Shown: piece after piece, positions 21,048-58,500 of the stretch
Layout of the letters: each line of letters begins with the position of its first letter
Numbering within the stretch: the stretch's first letter is position 1
Assembly (NCBI RefSeq): GCF_040938485.1
Contig: NW_027272134.1
Span: 620,001-684,000, forward strand
Direction of reading: 5' to 3'
From: Diadema antillarum
Taxonomy: Eukaryota
DNA: 64,000 bases
Program-made: the position numbers and the translations under genes
Notes under the pieces: model-generated
Database searches by the model: none
What the model was told of the DNA's origin: nothing
What the model saw: the letters and a program-made list of their open reading frames with translations, nothing else

Positions 21048-23467
21048 GTTGACTATAGACAAGTATCACACAAGCTGGAATGCCTCTTTTTTTAATTAAA
21101 ATTATTGAAAATCTACTTCACCATCTTTTATTTTCCTCTTGGAATCACTTTTTTTTTCCATGTGACAGCTTCAACAAGCAAACAGGTTTGATGTTGTCTA
21201 GAGCAACTGTCCGAGGCTGCCCATACCTCACCGTGATCACAAAACAAAGGAGTTCCTATCACATACATGTACACACTTCAAAGTTTGACAACATGGGAAT
21301 ATACATGCCTTCTTCAAGTGCCAAAGAAGCAAAACTGCTGTATATGCCATATATTTTGCAGGGTTCCCATTAAAAAAAAACATTGCATGTCAACCCCCCA
21401 AACCTGGAACTACCCCCATACAATCTATACAGAGGCAGAGCCCACTCTCTTCGTCATCCCACATTCTGTGGTTACCGTATTACTCTCTGAGCTTGTCAGC
21501 TTTTCTGTGAATTTGGCAATCAGTATTTTTCCCATGTTTTGACACACACAAAAAAAAGAGTCGCTTTTGAAAGGTGTGCAAAAAATATCTACACATCAGC
21601 AAAATATATGACAGAGGAATTCATCGCAGCAAAGGATGTTGCAGTACAGGGCGACGCTTTACAAACACGACTCCTTTACGTAAAATCCATACACTATTAA
21701 AACTGGCAAAGAGATTCTGCTCGGCAGGGGGCAAGGAACAGCTGCATACGAGAAGTGACTTAATCCAAGCAAGCACTGTTGCCAAAAGAACAAATCTGGC
21801 AGGGACTTCTACCTTTGAATTATACCAGAATTACAAGTGGACTTTGGCAACATACTACAGACATTTATACCTGGCATCTTTGGCCGACTGGAAGTGATGC
21901 TTAAGTGGATTGATTTACTGTCAGATTTGGCTATGACAGAGACCGCTTGAAGATGAAGGAATGGGGAGGGGGATGGGGATGGGGTACATCACGGTACACA
22001 TATGTGATAAAAAAATGAGTCACCGCCAGCAACTGCTTGATATCAATCTCTTGCTGAACCTTTTATTTTTTTAATTAAAAGTGAAACAAGAAATTCAATC
22101 TCATGGATGCCGAGTGTGCGATTTAGATTTTAAGAGGGTAGAAATGCTCTCAGTCAGCCAGTTACGGACATGGAGATCCTTCTGCAATGCAGTGTTAAAG
22201 GAACTCATACACTCCATCTATGCGCAACATTACAGCTTACACTCGCCCTTAATTCTCGAGATTGAGTAGTCTGTGTACCAGGCATCTGTTTCTATGAGTA
22301 CCAACATACAAAGTGATAGCTGCTTTTTTTTCTCTCTCATCTGAAATGTACATTTATTTACAAGGTTCTTGACACAAGAATAAATAATTCTAGCCACAGC
22401 ACACACCATGAAAGAGAGAGTCAAAGAATTGAATAAAAACTGACACTGAAATAATTCAAAAATTCTTGACTGGAAGTTCACTTCACATATGGGATGAAAT
22501 TCCTAACCACATCTTATATAACAAATTACACAATCATTAAAAAAGAATGGTTTTCTTGCAATTTACCTCTTGATTTGTTACGGCAATGACGGACGACAGA
22601 GATTTCGCTTAATTTTGAACGACTGACCATACACCATTGGGCTTCATTTGCAAAACATTACGGCAGTCTAAACTGATGCATAGTGGTCTCATGTTACAAC
22701 TAACGGGGCATTAAAGCTGGGTATTTGTGCATACATACATGTGTCTCTAGGTGTAGGTTCACATCGTATACATAATTCATCCCTGTGCATTCTTGAGGCA
22801 CAGGACATGTAAGTCTCGGGCAGCAGGACAACATGAAAAAGATTTGTGAGAAATGTCTCTGCTATTTCACCTTGAGGGTTGCTTGACCCATACATTACAA
22901 ATGTATTATTCTGATACCAATGGTGCATGGGAATCATTAATTTCGGCTGGAATACTGGATGGATTGTAATAGAGGCCAACTACCACCATTGTGCAGGTTT
23001 TATAATGCTCTCTTGAAGAACTGATGTAAGTTCTCAGCAAAATGCTGAAGGGGCATCATTTTTTAAGTGATACAAGAACATAAATCAAGTCCAGTGTTTC
23101 ACTTTGAACATGTGTTATCACTACTTCAGCAACATAAAAACTCTCGACGATGGATGTCAATGCATAATTGCAACAACAAAAAAAATTGTTAAAAGAAGAA
23201 AAAATAGAATGAATGCGTGATAAAACATGTTACAATATTTTTTTCCAACTTTTATTACACTTTCCCCGGGAGGTGGCAAGTTCAGCAGTTGTGTTTGGTT
23301 AGAGCACACAGCATATAAATTCATAGATACCTTAGTCTGAAAACTCACCGATTCTAACGTGCCGGCTACTCACATGAGAACTTTAAATTCAGAGAAAAAT
23401 ATTATGTGTCTACATTTTAAGAATTTCAGGAGATAACTCTCAGAAACTTTCACAGAGAAAGGACTTG

Positions 23468-23621
23468 CAGGGGTGGATCCAGGAATTCCGTAAAGAGGGG
23501 GCGCCTTTACAAAATTAAAGGGGGGCGCACGCTCCCTCCCCCATTTTTTTATTTTTTTTTGTTTTAAGAAAAAATAAAGGGGGGCGCGTGCCCGATGCGC
23601 TCCCCCCTAGATCCACCACTG
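23468..23621. mobile_element. CAGTGGCGGATC-type MITE, copy 1
   Basis: caggggtggatcc...gatccaccactg ends; internal ggaattccgtaaag..cctttacaaaattaaaggggg shared with 37715 and 50979. Confidence 0.7.
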
Positions 23622-24315
23622 ACTTGTATGAAAAAGCACACAATAAACCTGGGTGTGATATCTTATGTGAGATTTAAATTGAAAAGGAACAGAGCTTAGA
23701 ACCTTTTTTTACCAACCATTAAGCATCTGTGACTCTAGTGGGCAATGAACATTTACAAGCTGGGTAATTGTTTTGCCCACTTCATTCTTTTCAGTGAGCT
23801 CTACTCAACCAATGGTGGTAAACATGGTTCAGCCAACTGAGATAAATTTTTCACATCACCAAAGAGCTCATAACAAATGGCAGACACTAACTAACAGGGA
23901 ACTAATGACAATACAATCCATTATTACTTGGCATTGTTGTTTTAGGCAACAAATAAAAATACGGAAATGGAAGATGTCATATATACAAACTCGATAAACT
24001 GATATCGTTTTGCACGTGATTCGACACACTACATCTTTTTACTATCTCAAAAAGTAGCTGTTTTAACGTGTGTGTAACCATGCAATATTTCAAACCAGCA
24101 AATATAATTTAGATTGCACATTGTCTAAAAAAGACTTATAGGCAGCTTAGCCTCTTTTCCAGGAAACAAGATTTAAATGTTTCAGGTGTATATACATATA
24201 TAATATATATATGATATACATACATCTGAAACAATTAAATCTTATATCAATATGTAAATCCTTTCTCTATGCATGCCTACTGGAATGTCGTTTCTAACCA
24301 ATCACAACTGCCCCG

Positions 24316-24472
24316 TCACCGCGCAGATGTCCCTCCCGGGGATCTGTCGTGCCCTTTGTCGCGTGACCGGGAGCGTGACCTGCTGAAGGATTTCTCGTGG
24401 TCACTGTAGGAGCTGTCGGAGTGTGCTGGGCTGCCGCCGGGCCGCTCGTAGGGGACCGGCAACTTGCGGGCA
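24316..24472 (-). CDS. Srrm234: Srrm234 distal alternative last exon completing eMIC (SARKLPVPYERPGGSPAHSDSSYSDHEKSFSRSRSRSRDKGHDRSPGGTSAR*)
   Basis: Strong acceptor ctctttatcctcttttgaattggtctcttcctcggcag; phase 2 joins AG+T to give RRIT-S-ARK; TGA at 24318-24316. This reading frame is not in the supplied ORF track. Confidence 0.9.
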
Positions 24473-27400
24473 CTGCCGAGGAAGAGACCAATTCAAAAGA
24501 GGATAAAGAGTCAGCATGCAAAACATGCACACATACAACAATTGTCACAATGGCTATGTACAACTATGGCACTTGCCCCATGACCAGGGGAAATTGTTTC
24601 ACAAGCAAAACTGGACCGAAACAAATCTAGAAGGACTACTGGACCCCAGAATAGTAGTGCACGAACTGCACAAATGTTGGCAATTTTTTTGGGAGGCAAG
24701 CACTCTCCAAATAACAATGCTCCATACCATTTTTTCTGTTAGGATTCAGTATCCATACAAATTGGTTACACTGGAATCAAGTCCGACTATAAATGCCAGC
24801 ACAAATGGCGAAATGCTCTGAGAGAATTCGATGACACCACTGTCTTACTCTCTAAAATTAATAATAAAGTACATCAAAATTCTTAACGAAAACGGATTTA
24901 ATCTAAGCATAACTTTTGGCCTCTGCTATTTCATAAATAGTTGTTAACTCTTAAGAGCTAAATCCCTTGCTTATGCTTGTTAATGGCATTGTAAGATTGG
25001 TGCTAAATAGGCATAAAAATTAATTTTAAAAACCGACCTGGCACATTTTCAACTGAAAAGCAGAGTGACTTAAAAAGTTCACATGGAAACAAGCTCAGGA
25101 ATATAACTCAAAATGGAAAACTATGCCACATTTCGTCACAGAGATGTGTGTTCCTTTGTTGACAATTTGGATCTTAAAAATATATTCATCAAGCTTTAGT
25201 GTATCTCAAGTTTTGAGCTGAATTCCATACCAAGCTGTTGCTAAAGCAAACACTACACCAAAGGGTACTTATGGGTCTATTTGGACTAATTTGATGCCAT
25301 GTCTCCCATGCAGAGGTACATATTTATACGTCCTTGACTGAATGCTTCTTTTCTCAGAGCTAATGCAAACTTCTATAGGCAGGCATGGATGACTGGGAGC
25401 ACATCTTATTTATTGTCAAGCACAAGAAATTTTGACAGGTAGCATTTCTACGCTTGGGGCAAGTATTAGTATAAAACACTATGATGTTCAACATTTTCTA
25501 CGACAGATCGATGCCTACAGGGAAACTGTTCATCCAGAGCTAATGAACCATGCCATCATTTTGTCTCAACTACTTTATGTAGCACTACAAAGTCATCTTT
25601 GTGGAAAATCTGTGATGAACATTATCCACATTCAAACAATGAACAGAAGAACAATTCAGGTAAGTACTTTTTTTCTTTCAAAAAATGAATGATAGTAACA
25701 AACAACCTTCTGTAGGTCACTGATGGTTAAGTAGGATGAGTGGTGCGTTAAGGGCGTAAGTATTCGGCAAACACAAAGCGGTTAATGTTGCCTCACTCTC
25801 TTTCCACGTCAGACACATGAGCCATGGCATTGAGTCAGTGACACACACACACACACACATTGCACCTAGCCTGCCACCCTATGTTAACACTGAAATTTGT
25901 GCACAGGTTTTGTCACACACTCCAAAGCAACTCTGAACACCAACAGTTTATAAACTACCACACTGAATCAAAATTGCTCTCAAACTTATGGTGACAAACC
26001 ATGCATGTTCCCCTCTCTACCCCCACCCCCCCCAAAAAAAAAAGAATAATAATAAGTTGCTACTGAGGGAAAGAACATACCATTTGAATATCTGAATTAA
26101 TTAAACATAATAGATTTTCAGAACATTTTCATATATGCATTTCAAATCCATGCAGCCTGAATTTATGCAAACTAAAATTCATGCCAACTAATATCCTTTA
26201 AAAGAGTTTAGTCCTTTCTGCTGCTGTTTCTGTCAAGATGCACATGCACATTTTTGTGTTCTAGGGGGGCAGGCATAGACAAGAGTCGCATGAAGTTATC
26301 AATTAACGGCAAATGATTGCTTGAAAAGGTAAGCGGATGAGATATTAGGGATGAACACTCTCTATGTTATGCTACGTTGTGACTCAAGTCAGATTTAGTC
26401 AAAATATGTAATAACTAAAAATCATGATTTGAATTCAATGCACGGCTGGCAGACACACAGACACAAAGCTGTCAGAATTCCTCCAACATTAACTGTCTGT
26501 CTGCCCGCCCCCTGGCAATCGTTGAGAATGCTATAGCTATTAAAGTCAGTGGGTGCAGTTTAGAGTGGGTAAGGTAACGAGTTACACACATGTCCAAACT
26601 CCACAGAGCCGAACACTGGTCAGAGTTTTACTCTGGACAAACACTGTTAGGCTCCCCACTTGGTTTCCATGATTCACAGGCAGTCACTGTACTCAACCAT
26701 GTGACTAGTGCTCTCTATCCTATGTTAATCAACAGCCAAAAAAGAATGAAAAAGGACACAGCACGACAGCCAAATGGAACAAAATTAAGAAAGTGCTGTG
26801 TATCAAATTAATATCCCAGTGCAGTATGACTTGCTGGCACAGTAATAATCAATCCCTTATGAAAAGGTGACCAAGACAAGTGTTCCAGGCTTCTTTGCTA
26901 TATCTTATTCACTAGGGGAAAACACTATATTTTTTTGTATGGAGAACACAAAAATCATGTCAGTTAGCTCAATTTCACCTCACTCATCCTGCGAAGTTGA
27001 TAATAAAATCCTCCCCACCCCCGGGGGAAAAAAACGACAAACAAACACACAATTTTTTTTAAAAGTAAAAATCATCAGAATACTGTCAGAATAACATTGT
27101 CAAAATCCAAATTCTATGATAAAAAAAGAAAAAAATGTAAACAAAACTACAAACCCAAACTTATACATGTTTGTTGAAGCAGTAAATCTAATACATCAGC
27201 GCTTTAAGCATGTAATGGTAAGGTAACTTTGGGGCTTCCATTACTTGTTCGTTCCTGAAAAGTTCATGAATATGCACTACAGTTGTATATCATGAATTTC
27301 AAGACCATTTCATTGATATTTCATGCTACAATGGCAAGCATTACTTGAGCCCCACCTATGTGTTCTCCAAGCATCAAAACATACAGTACATAAGTGACTG

Positions 27401-30400
27401 GTTGTTGTGTCACATGGTGTGGAGTTATACCGTCACCATCCCACATACAACAGGACATGACGTGAGCGTTTTATTTGGTAGCCACCTGCACTGAAGAAAT
27501 GCCATTAGCGATGTTACACTCATTGCAGATTAGTATGGTGTCTAACTCACTGTAAAGCATTAGTACATTTTTGATTGGCAGTGAAACGTAGCCTGCTGAT
27601 GGTGTAGAGTAAGCTGCAGAGTGAAAGGTTATGGAGTTAGTTGAATAACAGCAAAAGAAACGACGAAGGTGTAACACACATTCTGCAGAGCCTGATGAGT
27701 GGGAGAAATGTGTATTAAACAGCTGTGTAACAGTGAGAAAACAGCATTAATCTATCAACTTTCATGACCTTGCTCCTCCATCACTCACACTCATAGTCAA
27801 ATCAATGATGCTGATTTCTGGGTTACCATGACAATGGGGACTTGGCCCTATTCATAACAAGTTACACTCAAACACCTATAAGGGTATGGTGAACACAAAA
27901 CAAACCAAAACTGGTATCATATCGATACATCTACACACAGACGGGACACATGGACAAACGGACATAAAAGAAGATGCAGAGAAACACAAAATTGGCAAAA
28001 GGAGGCAAGATAAAGACATTTGGACAGGATGACACTTTTAAAGTAGGACCGAGAGAAGTGGAACAGAAAGGAGGAATATGATGGCAGATGAGGGAAAGAT
28101 ACATCTTGAGAAGATGTGAAGTTATTGAAATACAAGTAAATTTTGTCACATTGATGGAATCTCTCCTAATTCAAAAGAAATCATTTTTAGTTTTGTTTGC
28201 ATTTGTTTTTTTTTTGTTTTTCTTTTCCTTTTTTGCCACACATTTATTAATTTAGAATAGGGCAGTGAATAAGCAGGAGTTTCAGTCTAATCTTTCTTCA
28301 CCACTGACTATGTAAAAGGATTTGGTTAGGAGAACTTGCTTCATTAACTTTGGGATGTGCTGTGTTAAAAAAACATGCATATACACGAGGGAGAGGAAAT
28401 ACCCAGATGACCCCAAAACATTGACATTGGCAGAATTTCTCACATACTGATATAACATACAGAACAAAGCTCCATACACACACACAACATACACACCCAC
28501 ACACAGATACACATTTGAGCATCAACAATATCGGATAACGGCAGTTAGATGACAGTCATATAACATGGTGTTAACATGCAATGTAGTACAGACATGCTTT
28601 GTGAGATATTTACTACAGCATGTTACCTACATCCATGTAGCAACAAGAGTACTTACGCTATCTACAAAACACGACATTGACATGCAAGCATGCGGAGATA
28701 AACAGAAAGGTATGTACCATGCATGCAAACAAATAACTTTCTTCTTTTTTTTTTTGATGGATATAATCAAAATCATGCATGTAAAATATGGGCAAATGTA
28801 CATGCAAAACTATACATGAAAGCATGAATAAACAAAAATAGCATGCAGGTAAATTACAAACCACCATCACAAGCACAACATCAAAATGGAAAACTTGCGA
28901 TGAAGTACAGAAAATTGCAGATCACATTTATGCCACGACATGCCGATGACGCATTTCACGGATGAAATATGTCTGATTTGTAAGCCTGCATCTTTCATCT
29001 TGCTCACAGCATGGACGGACATCTGACAAAATGATAATGACAAAGGCTTTCCGGCGAAAGCTGTAATTAGTTTCACCCTTAATCAGCATACTAGGATTTT
29101 AGCAATGTCAAAAATCTGATAATATATGCTAGTAAAGACCTGTTTTCTTGTCTCTTAGAGAAATTCTTATACCTTTTCAGAAAAAAAGGCAAATGAATGG
29201 AAGTACAGTTTGATGAAGACTAGGAATCAAACCTAAAACTTAGATCATGTATAATATGCATCCCACAAAAATCCGTCCCTGCAGTCACTGCAAAATGGGA
29301 GACACAGTCCTAATACAATGCTGTCAAACAAAGCTCAACTCAGATGAACTTTAATGAAAGAATAACATGCATGTACAATATTTTGTGGTAGGCAGCTCAG
29401 ACAATGTGCATTTGACCATGCCTGTGGCATTATCAAGTATCTATTTATGTATCTATTGTATTAATCACATATGATGACAAACCAAAATTGATATCTTGAA
29501 ATCAGCTGTTCTTGGGTACAACCAACTGCATATGTTGTGCAAATGGCTAACAGGGGTGGACTAACAAATGTACATAGTCTGTAATTTTGGTAATTTCTAA
29601 GCATTGCAATGTGTGGTCAACATCATAATGAAAGAGAGATGTCAAAGTGGATAGCAACATGGCCTTGAGCACAGACTAAGAGCTTCAGTTTGAAAAAAAG
29701 AGTTCGGCCCTGTAGATAGCCTTCTGGCAAATGCACAATGGAGCATTAGTTGATTTGCTTTTAGCATATCATTGTGCAGTGGTTTCTGTACACTGGCAAA
29801 TTCACCAACCCAGCTCCTCTGCAGTGTGACGTTCTCATGGTCAAAAGGCACATTGTCCTACATAAGGTGTAGCATGCTACAAATGATGCCTTGATACATA
29901 CGATGACAAATTCTCTCTTTGCAAATCACATCATGCAAGAAGCAGGGTGCAAGGATGAAGAAATAGTAATAGAGACCTCTTGACCCATTTTGATTTAACT
30001 TTTTTTTTTTCACACAGCAGTATAGCACTTAACTGAAAAAAAGAAGAAGGAATGACAGTACTTTGTAATTTGGACAAAAAAGAAATTGGCATTTTGTGTT
30101 TTGGTCTACTTCACAAGTCAGAAAGAACACTACCACAGTACAGTGGGCTATGCAATACACACATCAGTCTATCCCACTTTATTCCGGTGATAAAATGAAA
30201 TAAAGTGTATGGTAGAGTATAATCAGCTTGAAAGTATACAGCAGTAGCTTACCTGTCAATCAAATCAGGCATAACACATGCAAATGAGTTTGATTAGTTA
30301 GCATGCCATCAGGGCAATCTCTACTTTAAAAATGCATGTGACATGTAACATACATGAAAAAAAGAAGAAGTAAAAACTCAAAGTGTCTAGAATCAACTCA

Positions 30401-30484
30401 AGATTCTAACTATATGTAAAAGTGGACATATTCATGGGGTAGTGTCAGATGAATGTCTATGAGTTGGTATGGATGGGTGAAGTC

Positions 30485-30527
<43 letters not shown>

Positions 30528-33500
30528 TCATGCAAATCAGAGTGTTCATACCTCATTGAGATTGTGTGAAATGATACAATGTCACATAACACAAGGAAAG
30601 ACAACAGAGAAAAGACTATTAAAATGAGTGCTTGAAAGGCGTCTGATATGTGGCTGTATATTTGTCTCTGATCTTAAATGCTCTGTGACCGCATGCCCCT
30701 TGTTGCTACCTTTTCCCTGCTAGACAGGTTAAAACAAATCATCATGCCTCCTTACAAAGAGAACACCGAATGTTGATATAAAACCCACCACCCAAGAACA
30801 AGACTAAACTGCCACTAAACAGTTACCACTCTGAACACGACAAAGAAGAGCTAAAAACATTTCTGAAAAGGGGTGGGGCATAACGAGAAAGAGGGGGCAA
30901 GGGTACATCTGCACATTCTTTTCGCATTCTCACACTTATACCAAAAGCATTCTCTCACAACTGTTATCCCTTTTGCCTACCACTTGCAGGTGCAAACTCT
31001 AACAACTGTACATTGACAAATCTTGACCAATGAGCTGGAATCCCCTTGGCACGGTTCTACCGTAATGTCTAGATGTGAACGGGTCCATGGATGCTTCATT
31101 GCATCATCTGATCTGTGAATGAATCTTGTATCTATGACCCCATTTACAGTGCGAGGCTCGGTCCGCGGCTCGACCGCGACTCGGCCCAGCCCCGCTTCAG
31201 TGTAAACGCGCAAAAGGCCAAATGCGTGGCCAAAATTGGCCTCGCATTTGGCCTCGCTCTGGAGGTGGTCTCGGCCGGCCGTGGCGGCCGAGCCCGGCCT
31301 TTTCTCGGTGTAAACGCAAACTGGGCCAAATGCGCGGCCAATTTTAGTCTGGCTTCCAAACCCTCTGCCCGTACTATTTCGTTATTCAGGATATTAACCC
31401 CCTCAACATCGAAAACTAGTATAGTTTAAGGTGGTTTTGTCCTGCAAAGGATTTTTCCTTCGGCAAAGGCCTTTGCCCGAACGGCGACTTCATCGCCACG
31501 GAATCCAGTTGGCAAAGGGTCTGAAAACCAGACTATACCAAATTGCGTTTGTTTACAAGCAGAGCGCCACTACGACAAAATATTTAAAGGTTTGAATTAA
31601 AAGCGCGGCCGAGCCTGGCAGTGTAAACGGACAAAATTGCGGGGCTCGGCCCCGCAATTGAGGCTTGGGTCGGCCGCGGCTCAGCCGCGGCTTGGCCCAG
31701 CCCCGCACGCACTGTAAACGGGGTCTATAAAGGAGATTGAATATGTGTGTGGTGGCTGGCGATGAAATCTCTGGTCAATAGAAAGGAAGATCTATCATCT
31801 AGTGTGTATATATTGCTTCATGTACGTGACTTAGGGAGCAAAAGATGCACTTTTTTTTTTCAAAACTGATGTCGGTATACTGTCATAACAATAAAATTGA
31901 AACAAAAACAGAGAAAAAATAGTGTGCAAAATATGATATCTTCTGCTTTTTCTATCTTGATTGCACACTTCAATTTGATTTTTCACGCTGAATTGTTTTT
32001 GTTTCCAAAATAAACAAGGAAACATTTGAACAATGATGTAAGGCCCACAGAAAAAGGGCACCTTTTGCTTATTCAACCAGTACAGATGTGTGTGTATAAC
32101 ATGGTGAAATGTTAGGCAGTGTTAATCTGCAGCAAAGATGCTCTGCTTCTAGCGACAGAGCTTTCACAACAAGGCTTGGGCTACAAAACAACCAAGTGAT
32201 GTCTCTAGGATTTCAGTACTGCACATTCATTGCAAATCATCTATCTATCAGCTGGGAATGCGTAACAGATAACTTCAGTAATGTGACTTATAAATTGCAA
32301 TGTACCAAAATACACACTGTCCTCTCTTTTCATTTTTTTAAGTCGAATCACTTTGGATTGTAAAGCAGAATCATTTCCAGAATTATTGTGATCAAAACCA
32401 TATTTATAAACTTTCTATTGCCTTGCTGCATTAATCAGCATAACTGGTTGTTGAGTAGCACAAACTTTGGGGAAAAGCAATCAACTTTCTTTGAAGTTAG
32501 AGCTAGGAACTCTGCAGGCAGTAAATGCAGCATTCTTTGGCATTCCTGTGAGATGAAGTAAAGAACAAAAAATCAACAGAAAATATGAACTATGGTTAGT
32601 AGTGGTGATTTAAACAGACAAAGACTTTAAAGCATCCCCTACACTTTTGGAAGGCGATCGATGTTGTCACGTTTCATCGGCGGTAGTAGTGGCGGTCACG
32701 GTCCCGTGACCGCGACCGAGACCGGCTGCGATCCCTGCTGTCATCGCGCCGGCGTCGACGGTCGTCGTCGTAGTAGCCACGATCTCTGCTAGTTGATCTC
32801 CTACTGCTACAGGGAGAATGTTTATTTGCCAGGAGAGAATGGAAGAGGGGTAACCCAGCATACAACATACACCATTGTAAATCACTATACCTGTGGAGGA
32901 ATCTGATTGAATTTTCTCTTTATATTCTTCTACCTTTTCTCATTTTGTTTTGTGTTTGTATGTGTGAGACAGGGAGAGATAGAAGAGAGACGAAGAACAA
33001 AATTCTCCCGAACGAAACCACTCGTATGCTGGGCTTACAAAGTTCTTGGCAAAACCTTGACCACACTCTCAGGTACATATTTATATCTCACTTGCAGTAT
33101 ATATATCACAAAACTCAGCAGAATAATGGACAAATTTCATAATGTACTCACACAGGCCTGGCAATATTCATTTTTTTGATTAGGGGGGATTCCAAAGAGC
33201 AATCAGAGAGATACAAGGTGTATTATGTGCATCTCAATTGGGCAAACTAATCCCCAAATACAAGGACTTTTATATTTTATTGTCAGAGCATGAAGAGAAA
33301 GTTCAGCTCTCCGGGGGACCTCCCACAAAATCTGGGAGTTTTGGCACTTCTGTATAGATGCATGACTTCCTACCACCTCATCCAACAGTTATTGGTTCAC
33401 ATATTGCCAATGTGTTGGCTTGTGCATATTTCATACAAATTAGGTATTGCCATATTGGGTGTGTTCAGGCAAGCTTATCAATCATCACATCTGGCCTTTT

Positions 33501-36500
33501 GAGTACCACATAAAATTGGTCCATCTACGCTGAGAATAATCACTGGAAACATAGATACTGGAATGCATTGAATAATGCAAAATGCTGCGGAAAAGAAATA
33601 ACCAAAGAATTTTCATGACTTATCACAAGCAAGCAACATTATAAAAGAACAATCACAAGCTTTCATATACATACTGTTTACATATACCTAGATCTATATC
33701 ACATAGCTACATCTACTGATTCTTCACATGGTACAGATCACAGGTAAGCCTATCGAACATGGAACAAGATTGCTAACTGCCACACACATCACAAAATACT
33801 TACAGACACTTAACAATGAGCAGACAACATCATGCATCATAACCACACACAATCATGCCATTAACATCAACATCACGGTACATTCTATACACAAACATTG
33901 GACAAGGCAATTGAAACAACAATCTCTGTGAGAGAAATCCACAAAGTTCATTACAGAGGCCTTACATACGGTGACATGTTATCACAAAGTCTGGCAAAGA
34001 TTATCCTGCTGTTAAAACTGTGGTGCATTATCACTCTCAAACCTGGTGCATCTATAAACACACACATACACACACACACACACACATACAGACTACACAA
34101 ATACAAACTTGTGTGTTGTGTTCACACTGTGGTGATGCTACCATTGTTCTCTGCAAAACACAAGTGTAACACTCGGTGCGCTGGTCCTGGCTTCGACCCA
34201 ACGATCTCATCTCCGCACAGAGCCATAAACTGTCTGCAGTGCCTCGTTGATCGTATCAGACAAATTTACTTTCCAGTCGGGTCACTAAATATCACCTCAA
34301 ATTGTTTAAATCATCCATCTACCTTATGCTGTTTCATATTTTGAAATAGTACAGTATAGCTAAATTTGTATTTTTTAAAAATGGCTTTGTGATTTTGCAC
34401 AGCTGAGATCGATGGGTTGAATATCATCGGACTGCAAGCAAAGATTGATACCACTGCAAAACAATACTGTTACAAGTACCAATAACAAGTGCTTATACTT
34501 CTTAATTCGTTCCTGTAATAAAATTTGGTAATGTCATGTCATAGATTTATCACACCATTCATTCTGCTTCCTGAAAAAAAAAAAAAAATTAGCTAGGTAT
34601 GCACACAACAGCTTTCATAAGACTCAATTGAAGTGATGTGGGGAAGATTGCCTTCATTGTTGGCTAAACACACCTTTGACAAAATGAATACAAATTCAAT
34701 AAAGAATACTGGTATGTTCCCCCAAAATATCAAAATGATAGGCTACTAAGTTCATAAAAATTGTCATGCTATTCTGTTGAGTCAATGACATGCTGAGAAT
34801 GACCTTCAGCTCAGTCGGTTTAACACGATCTAAGAAATAATTCAAATTTTATTGTCTGAAAGGCATCACGCCATCCACTTCTCAACAACCCTTGCTTGAG
34901 TGCACACCCAGCTAAACATCACTACATCATGACTGAGGAGAGAATGCAACATGGTCCTGGATGCCCAAAGGCATTGGATCAGACCTTCATCTGGGACCCC
35001 GACGCGGGTCTTGGACCACTAACCTGGTGATTCTCCGGCGGTCCAGGAAGCTGGGCGAGTCACGCCTCTTGCGGATCGGCGAGAAGTTCTTCTCCTTGGT
35101 CTTGGAGCTGGGGCTCTTGCTGCGGGACTGGCGGCGCTGGTAGGGGGAGTAGCTCAGGGAACGGGAACGGGACCGTCGCCTCTCCTTGGAGTAACTGCGG
35201 GACCTAGTATGTTTCACGAGGAAAAGATGTTTACAGTAGCAGTTAACATCCCTCCTCACGTCTAGTGTATATGACTGGGATTCAAATAGTTCTAGGCTAG
35301 TTCCATTATTTGCACTGCAGTCCAGGCAGCACAGTCTATATGGCTGCTTCATATTTCATTATATTACAAACAGGCTTTCCATGAGTAACATAGTTTATGC
35401 ACATACTGGTACTTGAATAATAAACATATAGTTATAGTTTGAATAACATCTTTTCGTTTTTTCTTGATTCTAGAAATGATACTTTTATCACTACATTGGA
35501 AGTAGAATGGCAAAACAGTGTGATCTACTAGGACATTGTAAATACAACATTCTTACCATGTTATAATCATCACTACAAAATTTTTGAAGAGCACTCCTAA
35601 GAGAAAGCTGAAATATTTCATTTAGACCACATAAGTAATCTACCTTGTTACTGAGCAATTACAGTACTGCAGTGAAAACTCACCTATTCCTGCTCCTTGA
35701 TCTCGAGTGCCGATGTGAGCGCCTCTCCGGGGACCTGGAATAGCTCCTGGACCTGTCCGAGTCGTGGGAGTAGGACCGCCTGCTTCCGCTCTTCTTGCTG
35801 GACCGGGAGCTCTCGTCCTTCTTGTGGTGACGCTTGGACTCTGGGGAGCGCGAGTGGTGGGAGCGCCGACTCCTCTCCGGTGAAGACCTGAGAATGAAGC
35901 AATTTCACTTGGCGTCAATATTGCTGACTACTCATAGGTAAATGCTACATCCTTGCTGCAAATCAGAACTTGGATTTGACTATTCTTGGATCTCCAGACC
36001 CATAGGTCACCTTCCTTTTTTTTTTCATTTTGACATACATCAATAATTTCAGTTTGTTCTTTTTCCATCTATAATACCTATAACTTGCTTGTGAAATGTG
36101 AAATTGATCTTTGTGTATTCATATTTTTGCCTTTTATCTCAGGGAAAAACTGAAACCAAAATCTCAATCAAACTCAAACTACCAACAAAAAAAAATGAAA
36201 ATAAACCAAAGCTTACCGAAATGAATTTTTCTTTTGCTTGTACAACGCACCCAGGGGCATGTGAATAAAACAATGGCTAAAACAATCAAGCAACACTTTT
36301 CTAACCAATGCCGACTTCAGTCAGGCATGAACAAACAAAGAAGGAAACCACTTAAGACAGTGACTGTAGCAGCATTCACAGACATGGCTTACGATTCACA
36401 AAACATCCCATACTGCTTTTTCACCAGCAAGGTTTCAGGACGCAGCCTTCCTCTTAACCGTAAATCAAGAATGGCATGAAGTGAAACACTTTCCATGGAT

Positions 36501-38284
36501 GTTTCTCCCAAGAAGTATCAAGAGGAAGACGAAGAAGAAAAAAGAAACAGACAATTTTAAGTCAGTAAGATTCAAGGAAGTCCTTGCTCACCCAGCAGAC
36601 TCTCCCCCCGAGTCAGAGTCACTGTCATCCCTGGTGCGGTGGCGGTGGCTGCGCTTGCTGCTATGATGCTTCTCTGACTTGTCCCTGCTGCTACTGTGAT
36701 CATGGCAATGGAGGGGTAGCAAGAAAAAATGCACTATGGTAATCATTTTTTTTTTCTAGCTGTTGCTAGTTACCATGTTTCAAAATAAGGGGATTTCCAT
36801 TATAACCATGAAAGTGGAAATCTTCAAACACTTCCTGTGATATGAAACAAGCGCAAAAATGAAAAACACACAAATATTGTTGCTCGTTTCAACACTACTT
36901 CATATTTTGATTCCGCAGGATTTAAAACAAGCGAAATTCATCTTAAGTATCAGGCCAAGCACAAACATTTCCTTCTTGACAGTAATCAATTTGACAAATT
37001 ACCACATTTTCTTAGAGTTGCTTGACCCTTCCTGTATCAGGGACTATGGACAGAGATGCACAGTGCTATGGGGTTTTTTTGTGCCAATCAGCATCTAAAG
37101 CACTACACTGCTTTGAATCACTTTTAAAGGTGCATGGTCCCGGTGTTTTAGTCAAATGCGTACGTGGGCGCAAGGCGCAAGTTTCCTATAGAGGCCTATG
37201 CTATCGACTCCTCTTTGGCGCTTACGCTTTGCCCACTTCCCCGAGTCCGAAGAAGTCCGATTCACTGTAGTCAGTGGTCCGATCACAGTTCGGCTCATGA
37301 TTCGGCTGAGGGGGATGACAACTTCAGCAAACTTCTTTTTTGATGTCATAATAAGAAGCACATGTGCACGCATCCTGGCATTACTACAGACTGCGCAATG
37401 CGCAGAGAAGACATCGAAGGCAACGTTACTTAGCAACACCTACGCACTTTACTCTTGATGACAGCTCAACTTCGGTAATCTTCGTATCAATGCTAACGGT
37501 GATCGGCAGTATCATCAACAGCGCCCTCTACACTACCGGGACTATGCACCTTTAATTTCCTTCCAATTCACGTGACCTGAGCACACTAGGTGCTACACGT
37601 TTGTAGGCCCAATACACTTTGCACAGTCAACATTTCACTCACCATAGTATCGACGGAATGTAGTCATAAAGAGCAATTCAATAAATGACACTACTCTGTG
37701 AAAATGTCACATTGCAAGGGCGGATCCACGAATTCCGTAAAGGGGAGGTGCCTTTACAAAATTAAAAGGGGGCGCACGCGCCTCCCAATTTTTTCTTATT
37801 ATTTCTTTTGTTTAAAAAAATAATAAAGAGGGGGCGCGCACCCGGTGCGCCCCCCCCCCCCTCTGGATCCGCCACTGACTGCATTGTGTCCACAAATCTG
37901 AATAAGATGTATAATTGAAGAATGACCTCATATTACAGAAAGACATGCCTTTTGTATATATCCATAAAGGCAGTAGTCTCCTTGCAAACTATGTTAGTTT
38001 TTATGACCATACTGCAATCAATATAAAAATTGCACATCAGAAAATCATATACTGAGTTCTAGCGACTATATGTACAAGGCAATGGGAATCCAAAGCATCC
38101 CATAAAATTTCCTCCATTTTTCTTGAATGTCAGAGGCAATTGCAAAGTAACACTAGAAGAAACACTTTGTCCAGCAATTAAATAGAAACAAACCTAGTAA
38201 AAAGCCTGCCAGACTACACTGCAGTAAGTTTTCCCATTCATCTCCTCCCCCCCCCCTTTCATGAATGAGACCATTATTTTTTAC

Positions 38285-38322
<38 letters not shown>

Positions 38323-41300
38323 TTTCTATGTTGACCATAAAATTACTGTAAGCATTCAAAATAGACAACACCTGTGTTGGTTTTTTTTCACACTAACCAA
38401 CATTCTTATACATAAATTCATACTTATCAGAACTTTACCATCAAAACATTTGAGATGTGCCATGACTACATTAACCTGTTGAGGACGGTTTGATTTTGCT
38501 GCTACACGCATTTCCCATAGACGCTCGTGTGAGTATACTCGGGACTCATCCTCAACAGGCTAATATTTCACAAACCACCACATACCACTATTCTCCACAA
38601 ATAAATCAACAAATGTCAGCTATATTGCCACTGATATCACATCACACTTTGATCTGCTATCTATACAAGCATCACTCACCTTTTATGACTACTCTTCTTT
38701 TCTTTCCTACATACCAATGTGGCAGAAGGGACAAAAGGAAAGTGAACAAAAATAGTTACATACAAAATTAAGGTAAATATCATCTGTACAAGAGCAGAGT
38801 TTTCTAATAGTTTTTGAACTGAGCTACAAAGTGTTTGCATGAAAGGTGTAGAAGTCATGGTCCTAGCTGAGTTTTGAGCTTGAATTACAGAAATCCAGTC
38901 AGCCTTCAGTAATGGGTTAGCGCTGATGATGAGCTGTGACACACAGATGAGAAAAAAAAAGCCACACAAAACAAAAATATAAAAACACTACAATTAAACT
39001 ACAAAGCAACTGGAGTGGAATCTAAGACAGCTGCGATGAAGTTCAGAATGTTCACAGCAGTGAGGCCATGTGCCATTTACCAATTCAAATTGTGAAATGC
39101 ACAGTCTAAACAGACATTTATACCAGTTGATGTTTGATTCTGAAGGAAATGTGTCTAAAGTATGTGGCAGTACCGGTACATGTCTGGTAAAACAATACAA
39201 TAATCAGCCTTTATTTAAAAGGCTAAGGTTTCCTGTGCTACGTAGTAGCATAGCTACCATGGACCATGGCTCAGGGTTAGTCTCGTTTCCCAGGCTGAAG
39301 GTACTGCAAAGGTTAGAGCTTAAATCTTGTTATATGAGATGGAGGTTGCTATAACTCCTGAATTAGTTACAACTTCTGGAACAAAATTTTTAAATTTCTA
39401 CATTTCTAAAACAAATTTCTAGATAAACTTTTTACATTTGGTGCCTAATATGCTGTTAACGTTCCCATACCCTAGTAGGCACCATTTCCCAAGTTTCAAT
39501 ATGGATATCTAGCATCACTTACTCTAGTCTTTCAATTATATACTTATGAATTTATCCTGAGCCAGAATCATCTTGGTATCTTTCAAAAAGGATCCTCTAT
39601 CCTACCACACAATCAACTCTCATAATGAAAAAGCTGAAAATGTACTTTTGATATTTGAAGTCATCTTGAAAATATCATTCAGTATATGAGATGACAGAAA
39701 CTGGAGCTACCGGTATGTTGTAAGGTATGGAGGAACGTTATTGAGAGGACAGATCACGAGGAATTGAAAGAATTTCTACGATTTAAAGATGAGTATTCCT
39801 TCCGTGGCAGCAGAAAATTTTCCAGCTCTTTAAAAGCGTCTATGTACCAATATGACTGCCTACTGCCTACTTTTTAAAATGGTTTACGCTGCTTTTAGCA
39901 TTCGAAAATGAAAAAAGAAAAGTCGGCTTGCGTGAGTTTTTTTTTTTTTTTTTTTGGATGACTCTTACTTTGTGTGTGGCATTCTAATGTATAGAGCTAC
40001 AGATGCGTGTGTGCGGGTAGGTTTGACATGCAAGATTAAAGTGGTAACACGTGAATAAGACTCTGATCGTGATTTTCGTGCAAAAATCTGCATTTCAGCT
40101 GTTACACTACGCTTTACTCATTTGCCTTTGCACCGCATTCAATTCAACTGATGTTGGCATAACACATGGAATGACACATTAGAAACTATTAAAACTGAAA
40201 TGGAATGCATTAACATTGGAAAATAATTCCCCCCAAAATGGATCAAAATATATGTATGATTGCACACAGCAAAGAATTATGAAATGGCAGAGCAAAATGC
40301 AGCTTTTTGTTGTTGTCTATTTGGATATCTGAGGGGTTTCTTTAGAAGCACAATGCCACCAGAGCATATGAATTACATAGACAGAGACCAATTTCTTTTT
40401 TTTTTCCTTGTTCGCTTACCAAAAGTTTTAACTCTGCATCATTTCGATTCATGAAATATTTGTTTTTCCACCGCAAAATGGCAACTACAGCATTCCCAGA
40501 CATTGTCATAGCACATCAAAGAACTTTAGTTGCTGCACAGTCATCCTTTACACATTGTTGTAAAAGACTACAAGCTAGTTAAAGCCATTGTAAACACCTG
40601 CCTAGCTACATGTATGTTCCTCTAAAAACTAGCTACTAACAGGTCTTTACCCCAGTAACTTGAAGTCTGACTAGAAATAATTCCTCCTCAATGAAATGAC
40701 AATAACATGATTTTTCAGAACTTATATATATATATATATACATGTGGATGTATGAAAAATTAATCCCATGCATAATCCCATCAACAACAACTATAAAAAT
40801 TCTAAGACAACCACCCAGCTTATCTGAGATATCTGTAGATTGGTTGGGGGGGGGGGGTGTTTCATCAAGCGTTTTGTCATATATTTCTTCTGACAAACTG
40901 TTTTAAGCTACTGAAATCCTTGCATCTGATTGGCTGAGAGCAATTTTGTCAGAAAAAAAAAATATCAGACACAACGCTTGCTGAAATGCCCCCCAGATAT
41001 GTTGATGTTTCATTGATTCAATGTGTAGGTAATCTTATAATTTTTTTCTCTTTTTGGCACATCCAGTTCACTGGACTGAGTATTAACACAAAATAACAGA
41101 TAATTATCATGTTATGATTAAAGATCGATTTCAAACACTATGAAATAGACATATAAATGGCACCCTCCATGCAACACATCCTAGAATAGTATGCATCTTA
41201 GATGTGCTTGCGGAAAAATGTAAAACGACTATAAAGAGTGACCAGAGAGGTGTGTTGTTTGTTTATACATTGTAGCATTCAGGTGCCAGACTAAAGCCTC

Positions 41301-52500: not shown

Positions 52501-55500
52501 TTGGATATAGACACACTTTGAAACAAATCACTGACATACGTATTTATAATTCAAAGAAATCTGCAATACTCGACGTTCCACTCACTGTCGTATGTCATCT
52601 TGACCAGCGTGTTTACCGCTCATTCCAAAATTGAACACATTTTATATTAGCACGAGCGACAGATGATTCCACTCCTTACAGTAGGTTACAGACAAATTCT
52701 CCACATACATTGCCAATACACTTATCACTTGTAACCACACAAAGCCGCTGAATACGTTCCAGGATACGTGACAAAATGCAAGAGTATATTCAAGACCCCG
52801 AGGGCGGTTAATACATGGTCAATCAATAACAGCGATCTACGGAGGTGTTAGGCTAGGCACTTGATGTTTCGATTTAACGATAATGGGTTTTTTCTTTTGT
52901 TTTGTTTTTTGTTTCTTTTAAAAGCATGCAACACAGAAGAGAAGCAATGACAGGAAGAACACACAGGAATAGTGAGGGAACTCTTACCTGTGCTTCGACT
53001 TATGAGACTTCTTCTTCTTCTCCTTTCGTGCCGGTGAGTGACTTTCTGATCTGAGTTAGGAATGCACGGTCAAAACAATAATTACACATCTCCTAAACTC
53101 TGGATGGCAAAAAAAACTAGAAATGTCGCTATGGCGACTGGTATGCCTCCGTCATAATGCATGATTCTCCTAATAGGTCTATAGTTCATGTGGCCAATGT
53201 GTGATTACATTTTCACAAAATTTGGAAAATATTTAAAATCACGTGTTTGTCACAAATGTGTTGAATGTTCACCTTCCTCGACCTATGTTTAATTGGATGA
53301 ATAGGAGAGCATATATTTGGGGATTTAAGAACTTAACTTGACTTTGACCCTTTCATAAGTTTATGCATTGAGTAATTTTCAAGGCATGGAGAAAAAATTT
53401 GAAATCACCTCCATAGACTACTGTGCTAGAATTATTCTCAGACCGAGAATAAATGCAATTATCATAGATATCTTCATAGTTAATGTGTTACTTTCATTAT
53501 TTTTGCATTCTTGTTTGTTTTGTCATCCATCTGAACATAATTAGACTGGTCAGGCAGCTCAGTTTTAGAATTTTTTAAATCGATCAAACACAATGTTAAT
53601 CAGTGGCTTTTAACTGAAGTTTATGGGTCTAACATCTGTAATATTATAAAAATATTTCATTTTTGTTATACTGTAAAACATGATATACTCGCGGCATGAA
53701 TTTTTCGCGAATTGGAACCGACAGCCTTTTTCGTGGCATGAAATTTTCGCGAAGTGCCACTGGCGTTCAATGCATATAGTGTAAACAAGGACTTTCGCGT
53801 GCATTTTAATTTCGCGAATCTTGGCGCTAGCAAAATTCGCAAAATTAAAGTGCACGCGAAAATTCCTCGTTTTACAGTATCATAAGGACCTTTGTGACCT
53901 TTGACCTTTGACCCCAAAATACCAGTGAATATTTGTCTTGTCATACTCTACGGACTCTACAGAAGGACGGACGGATGGACGACCCGAAAACATAATGCCT
54001 CCGGCCACTTCGTTGGCGGAGGCATAAAAAGGGTAACAGTGGTTTGCTTGGATACATAGACATGAAACCACTTCTAATCTAAAGCATTCATACTCCCCTT
54101 GAGATGACCTCAACTTCTACTCATATTCTGGTGACCCATCAGTATCCCTCTAAATAACATTAGCACATTATATATGTCATCTGCATTTCACCTGTCAGGT
54201 TGCAAAATGAGGGAGGCAAAATTGGAGAAACAAGCAATGGACATCGAGTGCTATTCACACCAGGAGCACTTAGCTAATACATCGACCTTGAGTAAAAGCA
54301 GGAAACATATTGCTATTATTCTGTAAAAGTGCACTTTTATCCTGATGCATGAAATTACCCTATAAACTAGCTCTCATGCCTCAACTCATGCCTAAAGAGG
54401 GAAAGTGGCACTCTGTCATGATTAATCCTTTTTGTCACACCAAAAAACGGACAACTCAATAACTCAATTCCACGCAGCGCTCTAAGTGACACTATTGTTG
54501 ATTTACGATGCCAATTCCAGGCCACTAATATCGTGCAGTCTTTGTGCGCCATTTATTCAATGAAGCGTCAAGTGGCATTAACTGATCTCTGAAGTGTACA
54601 GGCATGCATGGGGAAGTTCATCGATGCCAATCCAAGTGTTCGCATTCTGTATATGTTTCACCGACGTGCCATCAACACTGCAGTGTAAGCCCTAGCAGCT
54701 AGTTGCTCTCAGTAACGACAGCTTCCGTTACAGTGAAAAACAAAAATCATGGACTAGTTTACTGACAAGCTCTACTTGGCTCACATGTGAAAAAATTTCC
54801 AAGCGAGTAAGGAGGAAAAACTACATTATGAAAAGGTGTGCAACCAGAAGCATAACGTTGCACCCTTTTTCTTTGGACTGCTATTGTAATGCCACTAATT
54901 AGGACTGTCTAATTGTCCTTGGGATGGCAAATCTGCTAATAGCGTTCACAGCATGCATTTTAGGGCATGATAATTACACAGTGTGGAGCTCCATTCTAGA
55001 GATGTTTCTTGTTTTGTTTTTTTTTCCATCACCTAACATTCCATCTAAAGGACTTTCACATACATGTACAGCTGGATCACATTCACTGTGCTGAACCCCT
55101 TGACATCTTGTACGAGGTATGTGACTGGACTATTTTTGAGGGTTTTTTTTCCCAATTCTTGCCAGTTTTTTATTGATCTAATATTCTTGTGAAAGAATTT
55201 CGACAATCTCTGCATTGAACAATGACAAGCATGAACAATAACACGCTAAAAGGACACACTCAATAGGCTGCACAAAGAATGCAACCTATTATGACATCAT
55301 CAGGGATCTCATCACCTGACTGTTGGTTACAAAGGGGCCCTTCTAATCACTGAATGGATACTGTAAAACATGATATACTCGCGGCACGAAATTTTCGCAT
55401 ATTGGGGCCGACGGCCTTTTTCGTGGCAAGAAATTTTCGCAAATTGCCTCTTGCGTTCAATGCATATAGTGTAGATAAGAAATTTCGCGTGCATTTTAAT

Positions 55501-58500
55501 TTCGCGAATCTTGGCGCTCGCGAAATTCGCGAAATTAAAATGCACGCGAACATTTTGCGTTTTACAGTATTATACAGTGGAAAAGAGCACAGAAAAACAG
55601 TCCCATACATTTTGTGACAATTGTCATATAAGTTAAATTCTTTGATCATACACTACCAGAAGAAAAATCACACAAATATGATGGAAAATGAAAAATGCAA
55701 CCAAGAGGACAGGGTTTCAAGCTCTCTTTTTTTAGGTCTAAATGCAGGGAAAGGCATTTCTGCCAGCCACAAGAAACATGTTAAGAAGCTGATCTCTAAC
55801 CTGCTCCTGTGACCACTTTTCTTCTTCTTCTTCTTTGGAGGTGGTGATGGTGAACGACTAGGTTCTCGGAGTATCCTGGTAGAAAGTAAAAAACACACAA
55901 ACAAATTATGAGATGCATTATAGTTTTTTGTTGTTTCTTCAATACAATACAAAAGGCCACACACATCACAAGGGCTGCTAAAAAAAAAAATGCTTGTTTC
56001 AAGACACAAACATAAACACACACACACACACCACATGCATGCATGCACCCCCCCCCCCCCCCCACACACACACACACACTCCCTCTCTCTCTCATTCACT
56101 CACTCACAAACAAATCTGACCCATGGCGGTGAGTTGGTGAATTTTACACGATAAAATGTACTACATGCAATTTCCTGCAAAGTTTTTTTCTTTGTGCTGG
56201 GGAGGGACCATTCACATAAGTCCCAAAATAGTCATGTAACGAATCAACCCTAATTCAAGACTTGTTATACCCAGCAAAAAGGTTCGGAGCTGAAGTATCT
56301 TTTGCAACAATGTGTAAATATTCATAATCAATTCACAAAAATCTCAAAGATTCATTAAAAAACAAACACCCCCTTTTTTTTTACATGACCAAATGTATTA
56401 CATGCAATTAACAATGTTATGATTTCTTCTTTTTTTTTGTGCTGGGGAGGTACCATTCACAGAAGTCCCAAAATAGTCATGTAATGAGTCAACCCTAATT
56501 CAAGACTAGAGTTGAATTGATTATGACTATCTAGACATTGTTACAAAAGATACTTCAGTTCATCACTGCTGATAATGATTTACAAAGAAATTATCAATGA
56601 CAAGCTCTAAAGAAAGATATCTTTGTAACAACCGAAGACATCAACATCTGAGATACAAATGACTACATATCAAATCATTTGTGACTTACTCATATTTCTT
56701 CTCAGCCATTGCCTTAGCCTCGGCTTCCTTAGCCTTTCTCTCTGGGTCAAAGGAACTGCCGTCGATGTAGCCATCTTTGATACCAAACGCTTCCCTCAGC
56801 TTGGCATTCTGTTTCTCTTTGGCCTCAGCAATCTCATGCGAATCTGTCAAGCTGATGAAACATGGTCACGCATTTACAAAATGATCATGACAATAATGAT
56901 AATCATCATCATATCACAATCATAATCATAATCACAATGATGGATTTATTAACGATCATTAAAGGACAAGTTCACCTTCATAAACATAAGGATTGAGAGA
57001 ATGTAGCAATATCAGTACAACACATCATTGAAAGTTTGAGGAAAATTGGACAATCCGTTCAAAAGTTATGAATTTTTGAAGTTTTTGTGCAGTAACCGCT
57101 GGATAAGAAGACTACTGCAGTGTGTGAATAACTTAGATGTCACATGCGTACAACAATATAAGGAAAATATAAAGAGAATTTCACAAAATTTCATCTTTTG
57201 CAAAAAGTACACATTCCCCCGACTCGTTACCGACAAATGTTATGGGTAATATTATTCCCCCTGCCTTTAGAAAGAGTCAAGTCAAGTGCTCTTTTATTAT
57301 GCGGAAAAAGTGAAAATATGTTGAATTTTCTTTACATTTTCTTTATACTGTTGTACGCATATGACTCACAAGCTGTAGTAGTCTCCTCATCCAGCGGTTC
57401 CAACACAAAAATTTTAACAATTCATAACTTTTGCATCGATTGTCCAATTTTCCTCAAGCTTTCACTGATGTGTTCTACTAATATTGTTGCATTCTCTCAA
57501 TCCTTATGTTTATGAAGGTGAACTTGTCCTTTAACGATCATTATCATCATCATCATCATCACAGCACTGTCCACACCATATCATACGAGACATGCTCATA
57601 TGGAACCAACGTTACCGTAAAACAAACTGCATCCATTTCATGGAACTGTCAAAAGTGCTTTGCACACACTAGGAGATTAATTGACTATGGAATGTGTGAA
57701 ATATAAAATTCTTCCAAACTGATATTGGGTGAAAGTCTATCAAAACATCTAAATGCAAGCCAGAAGCGCCCACACGTCTGAACATCTTTCACCCAAAGAT
57801 GCATCAAAATGCATTACATGCTATTCAGAGGTTACTGCATCAAAACCAAATGAAAGTCAATGAATTCATTATTAACCTGAATGCCAGATATTAAGTATTC
57901 AAGTAATCGGACACTTGTCCTACAGGACTGCAACTTGCATCCAATTCAATTTCACAAGAATAACAAAGGAGAGAGAAAGAGGAGATAAACTACAACTGAC
58001 CTTGCTCTTTCCGGTGTCGCTTTGCCAGCCAGGTCAGCAATGCCTTCTTTCTCAAAGAGCATCTTTCTGAAAGCAGCCACTTTCTTCTCTATCTCCTCCT
58101 TGGAATATGTTCTGCACAAATAATTCAAGAAATACCAACAACATGATAAGGTAGAATTACATTTTGTTTAAATACCATGTGGTATCTAATGTGTCAGATT
58201 CACAAAAAGAGCTACCATGTGTACTATGACACAAATATAGAGCCATTCAGCAATTTTCCTCCAAGGTAAATTGTACTTTGCATTGCTAATGAATAACTGA
58301 ATTCAGCTTTTAGATATTAGTTTATGTACATCAGGAAATGACTTACTTACATACTCTGGCCATCATCCCTACTTATAAATGTACACAGCAGATTCACAAT
58401 CCCTTTATACCATCAGAGCGAGACATAATTTATCTGCAGCATGTAGTCATCGGTTGTAACAAATACTACTAAGTATTGTTATAACTCAATGCTCTCTTCA

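Follow-up and report, generated by a model that had tools for sequence, protein, structure and literature searches.

The minus strand of a 64,000-nucleotide stretch of Diadema antillarum DNA (assembly GCF_040938485.1, contig NW_027272134.1, positions 620,001 to 684,000; referred to below as the window, with positions counted from its first nucleotide) very probably carries one echinoid Srrm234 gene, which extends from 59030 to approximately 23250 and has two alternative last exons giving two isoforms. The identification of the locus as Srrm234, the pro-orthologue of SRRM2, SRRM3 and SRRM4, is supported by the predicted protein, which has a cwf21 domain at the N-terminus, an Arg/Ser-rich (RS-rich) middle and a C-terminus containing the eMIC, the microexon-activating domain described by the Pfam family SRRM_C. 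The reading is carried by the exon structure, the reading frames, the identity of the domains, and the conservation and order of both tails across echinoderms. This architecture has already been published for non-vertebrate Srrm234 genes and the eMIC isoform of Strongylocentrotus purpuratus is present in RefSeq; the finding is therefore correct but already known.

In the proposed arrangement, the cwf21 domain, a middle rich in K, S and R, and the first half of the eMIC would come from nine shared coding exons. If the shared donor (35024) is spliced to the near exon (32806) and the transcript ends there, the product would be a 429-residue protein whose eMIC is truncated and whose tail is of the RS/RD type. 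If instead the near exon and its polyadenylation (poly(A)) site are skipped, splicing 10.5 kb on to the far exon at 24472 would yield a 437-residue protein with a complete eMIC. By analogy with Drosophila and with published evolutionary work, the near-exon isoform may be the general spliceosomal form, the far-exon isoform may be restricted to neurons and drive microexon inclusion, and the choice between them may be a contest of proximal splicing and polyadenylation against distal splicing. The use of both junctions in D. antillarum, the placing of a proximal poly(A) site, the neural restriction and the microexon activity are all predicted from orthology.

Drosophila Srrm234 has a proximal and a distal exon, the distal exon contributes an essential part of the eMIC, and the switch between the two operates only in neurons, under the control of ELAV/Fne; ectopic eMIC is harmful (PMC8797185). 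The preliminary description of the window had cited Torres-Mendez et al. 2019 for the production of the eMIC by alternative last exon use in invertebrate Srrm234 genes. Two secondary sources agree with this (PMC8797185, PMC10551640), and the second, referring to the 2019 work, gives the alternative-last-exon eMIC as the ancestral bilaterian state. A literature search returned no paper linking the eMIC with sea urchin.

Structure of the gene and its two C-termini

On the minus strand, the exon shared by both isoforms (coding exon 9) begins at 35203, just behind an AG at 35205-35204, and ends at 35024 in a donor AG/GTTAGT (here and below a slash marks a splice border). Its translation ends KNFSPIRKRRDSPSFLDRRRIT (...RRRIT), followed by two bases, AG, of a split codon. 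Joined to the proximal acceptor, ...ctgtag/C at 32806, this donor continues in frame into SSRRSTSRDRGYYDDDRRRRRDDSRDRSRSRSRSRDRDRHYYRR, giving a tail of 44 residues before the TGA at 32676-32674. Joined to the distal acceptor, ...ctcggcag/T at 24472, which lies 10.5 kb from the donor, it continues in frame into SARKLPVPYERPGGSPAHSDSSYSDHEKSFSRSRSRSRDKGHDRSPGGTSAR, giving a tail of 52 residues that begins SARKLPVPYERP and runs to the TGA at 24318-24316. The preliminary description had given exon 35203-35024 a phase-2 donor with two in-frame acceptors, one leading to an RS/RD tail and the other to the eMIC tail 10.5 kb away; its coordinates proved exact on the minus strand and both reading frames were recovered. 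The near acceptor is a triple tag/cag/tag with all three AGs in frame, an arrangement also found in S. purpuratus, and tandem in-frame acceptors at 32806, 32803 and 32800 are thus possible for the proximal exon.

The orthologue was reached by comparing the open reading frame (ORF) of exon 1 with 1.8 billion representative proteins and then running two word-indexed searches. It is S. purpuratus XP_003726265.1, named 'serine/arginine repetitive matrix protein 2 isoform X1', a protein of 442 amino acids with cwf21 and SRRM_C domains. Exon borders were then assigned by a script that picked canonical AG/GT sites preserving the frame on a colinear alignment to this protein. The resulting gene has 10 coding exons on the minus strand, beginning with an ATG at 59030, and all of its borders are AG/GT. 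All internal exons are multiples of three nucleotides, the codon at each border is interrupted between its second and third bases, and all nine constitutive donors have A at +4 and G at +5. The 437-residue eMIC isoform is colinear with XP_003726265.1, with 89.4% identity over 433 aligned residues; the near-exon isoform is 429 residues long.

The start of the cwf21 domain is held by an 80-residue ORF at 59030-58788 (MYNGVGL...MEEQG). Exon 1 alone scored 29.9 bits against Pfam cwf21 (PF08312; cut-off 23.2), and the domain extends into exon 2, as in the orthologues. Exons 7-9 make up the Arg/Ser-rich central region, with 35-58% R+S.

At the other end of the protein, the shared exon alone matched Pfam SRRM_C above the cut-off (31.4 bits, E=3e-07), covering profile positions 23-55 of 67. 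When the peptides spanning the two junctions were compared with the same profile, the proximal join scored 37.1 bits and covered positions 30-59 only, and the distal join (51 residues) scored 56.6 bits (E=4.1e-15) and covered positions 30-67, reaching the end of the profile. Thus only the far exon completes the domain. In an alignment that took in echinoderm, mollusc, arthropod and fish SRRM3-like sequences, all of the invariant eMIC columns (R..SPS....RRITSARK.P..Y) were kept in the D. antillarum sequence. Both profiles named in the earlier proposal, SRRM_C and cwf21, were matched, and the identification of the spliced C-terminus as an eMIC of the SRRM3/SRRM4 type is borne out by the SRRM_C match together with the alignment to the fish SRRM3-like sequences. 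Every part of the structural interpretation held when tested: cwf21 domain, RS middle, split eMIC and two tails.

The eMIC reading frame stays open for 58 codons but has no start codon, and the listed ORF at this place (24294-24563) uses another frame. The earlier remark that the eMIC frame is missing from the ORF list is accordingly true, but trivial.

The two tails in other echinoderms and alternative readings

The genomic loci of S. purpuratus, Apostichopus japonicus and Antedon mediterranea were compared with that of D. antillarum. In all three (3/3) the shared exon ends ...RRIT with AG/GT. An RS/RD open stretch follows 0.5-1.7 kb downstream (2.2 kb here), ending FYRR, DYHR or DYYRR before the stop (HYYRR here), and the eMIC exon lies 5.3-7.8 kb downstream (10.5 kb here). 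The order, near then far, is the same in all. S. purpuratus XP_003726265.1 has the same 10 coding exons and the same RRRIT/SARKLP junction, and its genome contains the same near exon; the near and far exons lie at 1.2 kb and 7.8 kb, compared with 2.2 kb and 10.5 kb in D. antillarum. Both endings are annotated as RefSeq isoforms of one gene in Apostichopus (X4 versus X1/X3) and in the mollusc Haliotis asinina (X3/X4 versus X1/X2).

The two echinoids are related but clearly diverged: their introns cannot be aligned, and synonymous sites have reached saturation. Third codon positions account for 25 of 36 differences in shared exon 9, 23 of 38 in the near exon and 19 of 41 in the far exon. The corresponding rates of nonsynonymous and synonymous substitution (dN and dS) were 0.07 and 1.42 for the shared exon and 0.23 and 0.80 for the far exon; for the near exon dN was 0.19 and dS was too saturated to estimate. 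The codon-position counts therefore indicate that both tails are under purifying selection in the proposed frames.

The proximal 3′ end is less clear. An AATAAA at 30183 is the only AATAAA or ATTAAA in the 3.2 kb after the near stop. About 65 nucleotides upstream of it, at 30254-30247 on the minus strand, is an ACAG/GTAAGC preceded by a tgctaac box; across the 8 kb that follow the near stop it is the one site resembling a consensus donor. It was dropped as a lead, as no such site is found in the same region of S. purpuratus. The first 150 nucleotides past the proximal stop are conserved with S. purpuratus, and the stretch at 32673-32525 may be a small intron in the 3′ untranslated region or a third acceptor. 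Of the distal signals, the AATAAA at 23256 falls within a short block with weak alignment to S. purpuratus.

Several points weigh against a gene with two terminal exons of the kind proposed. For the proximal 3′ end, the single canonical poly(A) signal lies as far as 2.5 kb past the stop. The core of the eMIC reads K-L-P, as it also does in S. purpuratus and Apostichopus, instead of the K-R-P of most animals. The predicted tissue specificity is drawn entirely from analogy. Querying the protein collection with the last 119 residues of the S. purpuratus protein matched no echinoid transcript fragments, searches with full-length Haliotis and S. purpuratus proteins retrieved no D. antillarum protein, and a search for sequencing runs with the distal exon and its untranslated region gave none.

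It is also conceivable, although we consider it unlikely, that the near exon is mainly an internal 'poison' exon, spliced on to the far exon as in Drosophila isoform G. Both mRNAs would then share the distal 3′ end, and the near exon would not be terminal with a poly(A) site of its own; such splicing could coexist with use of the near exon as a last exon. The old S. purpuratus model P0299 does splice the near exon onward, using a GT 5 nucleotides after the stop to reach the far exon, but its near exon is translated in the wrong frame and the model has the look of an ab initio artefact. In D. antillarum a GT is found 3 nucleotides after the stop (AAC/GTGACA) and a conserved GTAGGG approximately 30 nucleotides later, yet these two GTs lack the A+4/G+5 of all nine constitutive donors. 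The distance of 2.5 kb to the only canonical poly(A) signal, with the consensus ACAG/GTAAGC 65 nucleotides before it, would fit an internal exon, but the GTAAGC site is absent from S. purpuratus. Finally, while both modes are used by Drosophila (PMC8797185), the RefSeq isoforms of Apostichopus and Haliotis terminate in the near exon.

It is very improbable that the eMIC isoform is the sole real product, with the near RS/RD stretch staying open only by chance or while it decays. For S. purpuratus a current RefSeq model was found only for the eMIC isoform, and all four Antedon isoforms retrieved carry the eMIC. However, echinoid, holothurian and crinoid loci keep the acceptor, the frame, the position of the stop and the Y-rich ending (Y/H)(Y/H)R(R) before it. 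The differences from S. purpuratus in the near exon are mostly at third codon positions, and equivalent tails are annotated in Apostichopus and Haliotis, with another in the Logan assembly contig P0155. The last alternative, that the eMIC match is a chance product of low-complexity sequence, starts from the R- and S-rich composition of the region, which inflates weak matches, and is refuted by an SRRM_C match of E=4e-15 that covers the profile end, by the exact non-repetitive motif RRITSARK.P.PY and by the colinearity of the entire protein with its orthologue at 89% identity.

Relation to known Srrm234 and SRRM genes

Two alternative last exons after a shared donor are also the arrangement of Drosophila melanogaster Srrm234, a single gene with a cwf21 domain, an RS region, an eMIC split between a shared exon and a distal last exon, and a proximal non-eMIC exon reached from the same donor (Torres-Mendez et al. 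2022, Sci Adv, PMC8797185). The 3′ region of the fly gene is compact, with a minigene of approximately 1.2 kb, whereas the far exon of D. antillarum is 10.5 kb away. The eMIC core is the same as in vertebrate SRRM3 and SRRM4 (nSR100), as judged from the fish SRRM3-like sequences in the alignment, and belongs to the same Pfam family, SRRM_C. In vertebrates, however, the eMIC is found in separate genes that are transcriptionally activated in neurons (PMC8797185, PMC10551640), whereas here it would be an isoform of one ancestral gene.

In human SRRM2 (SRm300) and yeast Cwc21, as in the D. antillarum protein, an N-terminal cwf21 domain is followed by an RS-rich region, and by homology the near-exon isoform would be the counterpart of these general spliceosome components. 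Human SRRM2 is far longer than approximately 430 residues. SRRM2 is without an eMIC (PMC10551640); the near-exon protein here has about 430 residues.

D. antillarum thus appears to keep the ancestral bilaterian arrangement, in which one Srrm234 gene would supply both a potential general splicing factor and, through a distal exon, a microexon activator. The analysis adds no new principle, but supplies the exact positions at which splice junctions can be assayed in sea urchin neurons. The preliminary description had considered the eMIC exon easy to miss in annotation, and this stands in part: several public models mis-handle the 3′ end, but the S. purpuratus and Apostichopus RefSeq models include the exon. 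The models concerned are P0299 (S. purpuratus, old model), P0179 (Dreissena), P0244 (Plakobranchus) and P0019 (Paralvinella), and the errors across them are a near exon read as internal, a wrong frame, or a stop at ...RRITR. As several public models mis-join or truncate the 3′ end, the result helps to correct annotation.

UGCAUG motifs and other features of the locus

The only new lead of the analysis is an enrichment of UGCAUG, the recognition motif of Rbfox, between the shared donor and the eMIC exon, which suggests a testable regulator of the switch. In this interval (35023-24473) TGCATG occurs 19 times on the sense strand and 6 times on the antisense strand, with a density of 1.80 per kb compared with 0.79 per kb further upstream in the gene. 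The corresponding region of S. purpuratus gave 16 sense and 7 antisense copies (2.05 compared with 0.73 per kb) and that of Apostichopus 8 and 1; in Antedon there was only a weak trend. When all hexamers were compared without bias, TGCATG came first of 2179 in joint enrichment on the sense strand of both echinoids, and no U-rich hexamer was among the top fifteen. The Drosophila switch depends on ELAV/Fne and U-rich sites, whereas here, going by sequence counts only, UGCAUG stands out and no U-rich hexamer does. Seven of the sense-strand copies form a cluster (Table 1), part of which, the block 28709-28604, can be aligned weakly to S. purpuratus, with several of the motifs preserved.

As TGCATG is the top-ranked hexamer in both echinoids and forms a seven-copy cluster, we tentatively propose that the switch from near exon to eMIC exon in echinoids may be controlled by a UGCAUG-binding protein of the Rbfox type, and not by ELAV alone as in flies, although we hold this to be somewhat doubtful. 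Were this so, the microexon programme of a deuterostome invertebrate would lie downstream of Rbfox. Two further TGCATG and several UGC motifs 45-60 nucleotides upstream of the distal acceptor were dropped from consideration, not being conserved in S. purpuratus.

Table 1. Positions in the window of the coding exons of Srrm234 and of associated sequence features
Feature	Positions	Strand	Description
Coding exon 1	58792..59030	(-)	MYNGVGL...MEEQG, cwf21 start; donor GG/GTGAGT; 95% identical to S. purpuratus residues 1-80
Coding exon 2	58001..58111	(-)	111 nucleotides, TYSKEEIEKKVAAFRKMLFEKEG...; alignment to S. purpuratus
Coding exon 3	56690..56851	(-)	162 nucleotides, SHEIAEAKEKQNAKLREAFGIKDGYIDGSSFDPERK...; alignment to S. 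purpuratus
Coding exon 4	55801..55875	(-)	75 nucleotides, ILREPSRSPSPPPKKKKKKSGHRSR; alignment to S. purpuratus
Coding exon 5	52988..53050	(-)	63 nucleotides, SESHSPARKEKKKKSHKSKH; alignment to S. purpuratus
Coding exon 6	38680..38706	(-)	27-nucleotide microexon, RKEKKSSHK; 27 nucleotides in S. purpuratus too
Coding exon 7	36592..36687	(-)	96 nucleotides, RS/K-rich
Coding exon 8	35684..35887	(-)	204 nucleotides, RS-rich
Coding exon 9, shared exon	35024..35203	(-)	RS repeats, then first half of eMIC FSPIRKRRDSPSFLDRRRIT
Proximal alternative last exon, coding part	32674..32806	(-)	RS/RD tail ending HYYRR, TGA
Conserved stretch after proximal stop	32525..32673	(-)	GTAGGGGA, TACTAAC-like box, pyrimidine run, CACAG/GAATGC
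Candidate proximal poly(A) signal	30178..30183	(-)	AATAAA, 2.49 kb after proximal stop
TGCATG cluster	28575..28847	(-)	7 sense-strand copies in 273 nucleotides, between proximal poly(A) signal and eMIC exon
Distal alternative last exon, coding part	24316..24472	(-)	second half of eMIC SARKLPVPYERP and S/R tail, TGA
Candidate distal poly(A) signals	23251..23553	(-)	AATAAA at 23553 and 23256

The 27-nucleotide microexon of Srrm234 itself (38706-38680) sits between introns of 14.3 kb and 2 kb. A UGC 18 nucleotides upstream of it was discarded as a lead, as it is not conserved in S. purpuratus. Within the 14-kb intron between exons 5 and 6 there is a 33-nucleotide cassette-like exon bounded by AG and GT (42074-42042, minus strand). 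It lies in a block, 42109-42028, that is 90% identical to S. purpuratus including the flanks, which is above the constitutive exons. In the exon phase of the gene it reads SGKRKKSKKH with no stop. XP_003726265.1 lacks it, and it probably represents a conserved alternative exon.

An intronic block of 202 nucleotides at 52400-52201 (minus strand), approximately 600 nucleotides downstream of exon 5, is 83% identical to S. purpuratus. It is T-rich, with no clear exon borders, and is without an Rfam match; an Rfam search of positions 20000-62000 gave no matches.

Beyond the gene, two blocks at 15661-14358 match an Mpv17/PMP22-family gene that also adjoins Srrm234 in S. purpuratus. As a member of this family lies beside Srrm234 in both S. 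purpuratus and Apostichopus, synteny is conserved.

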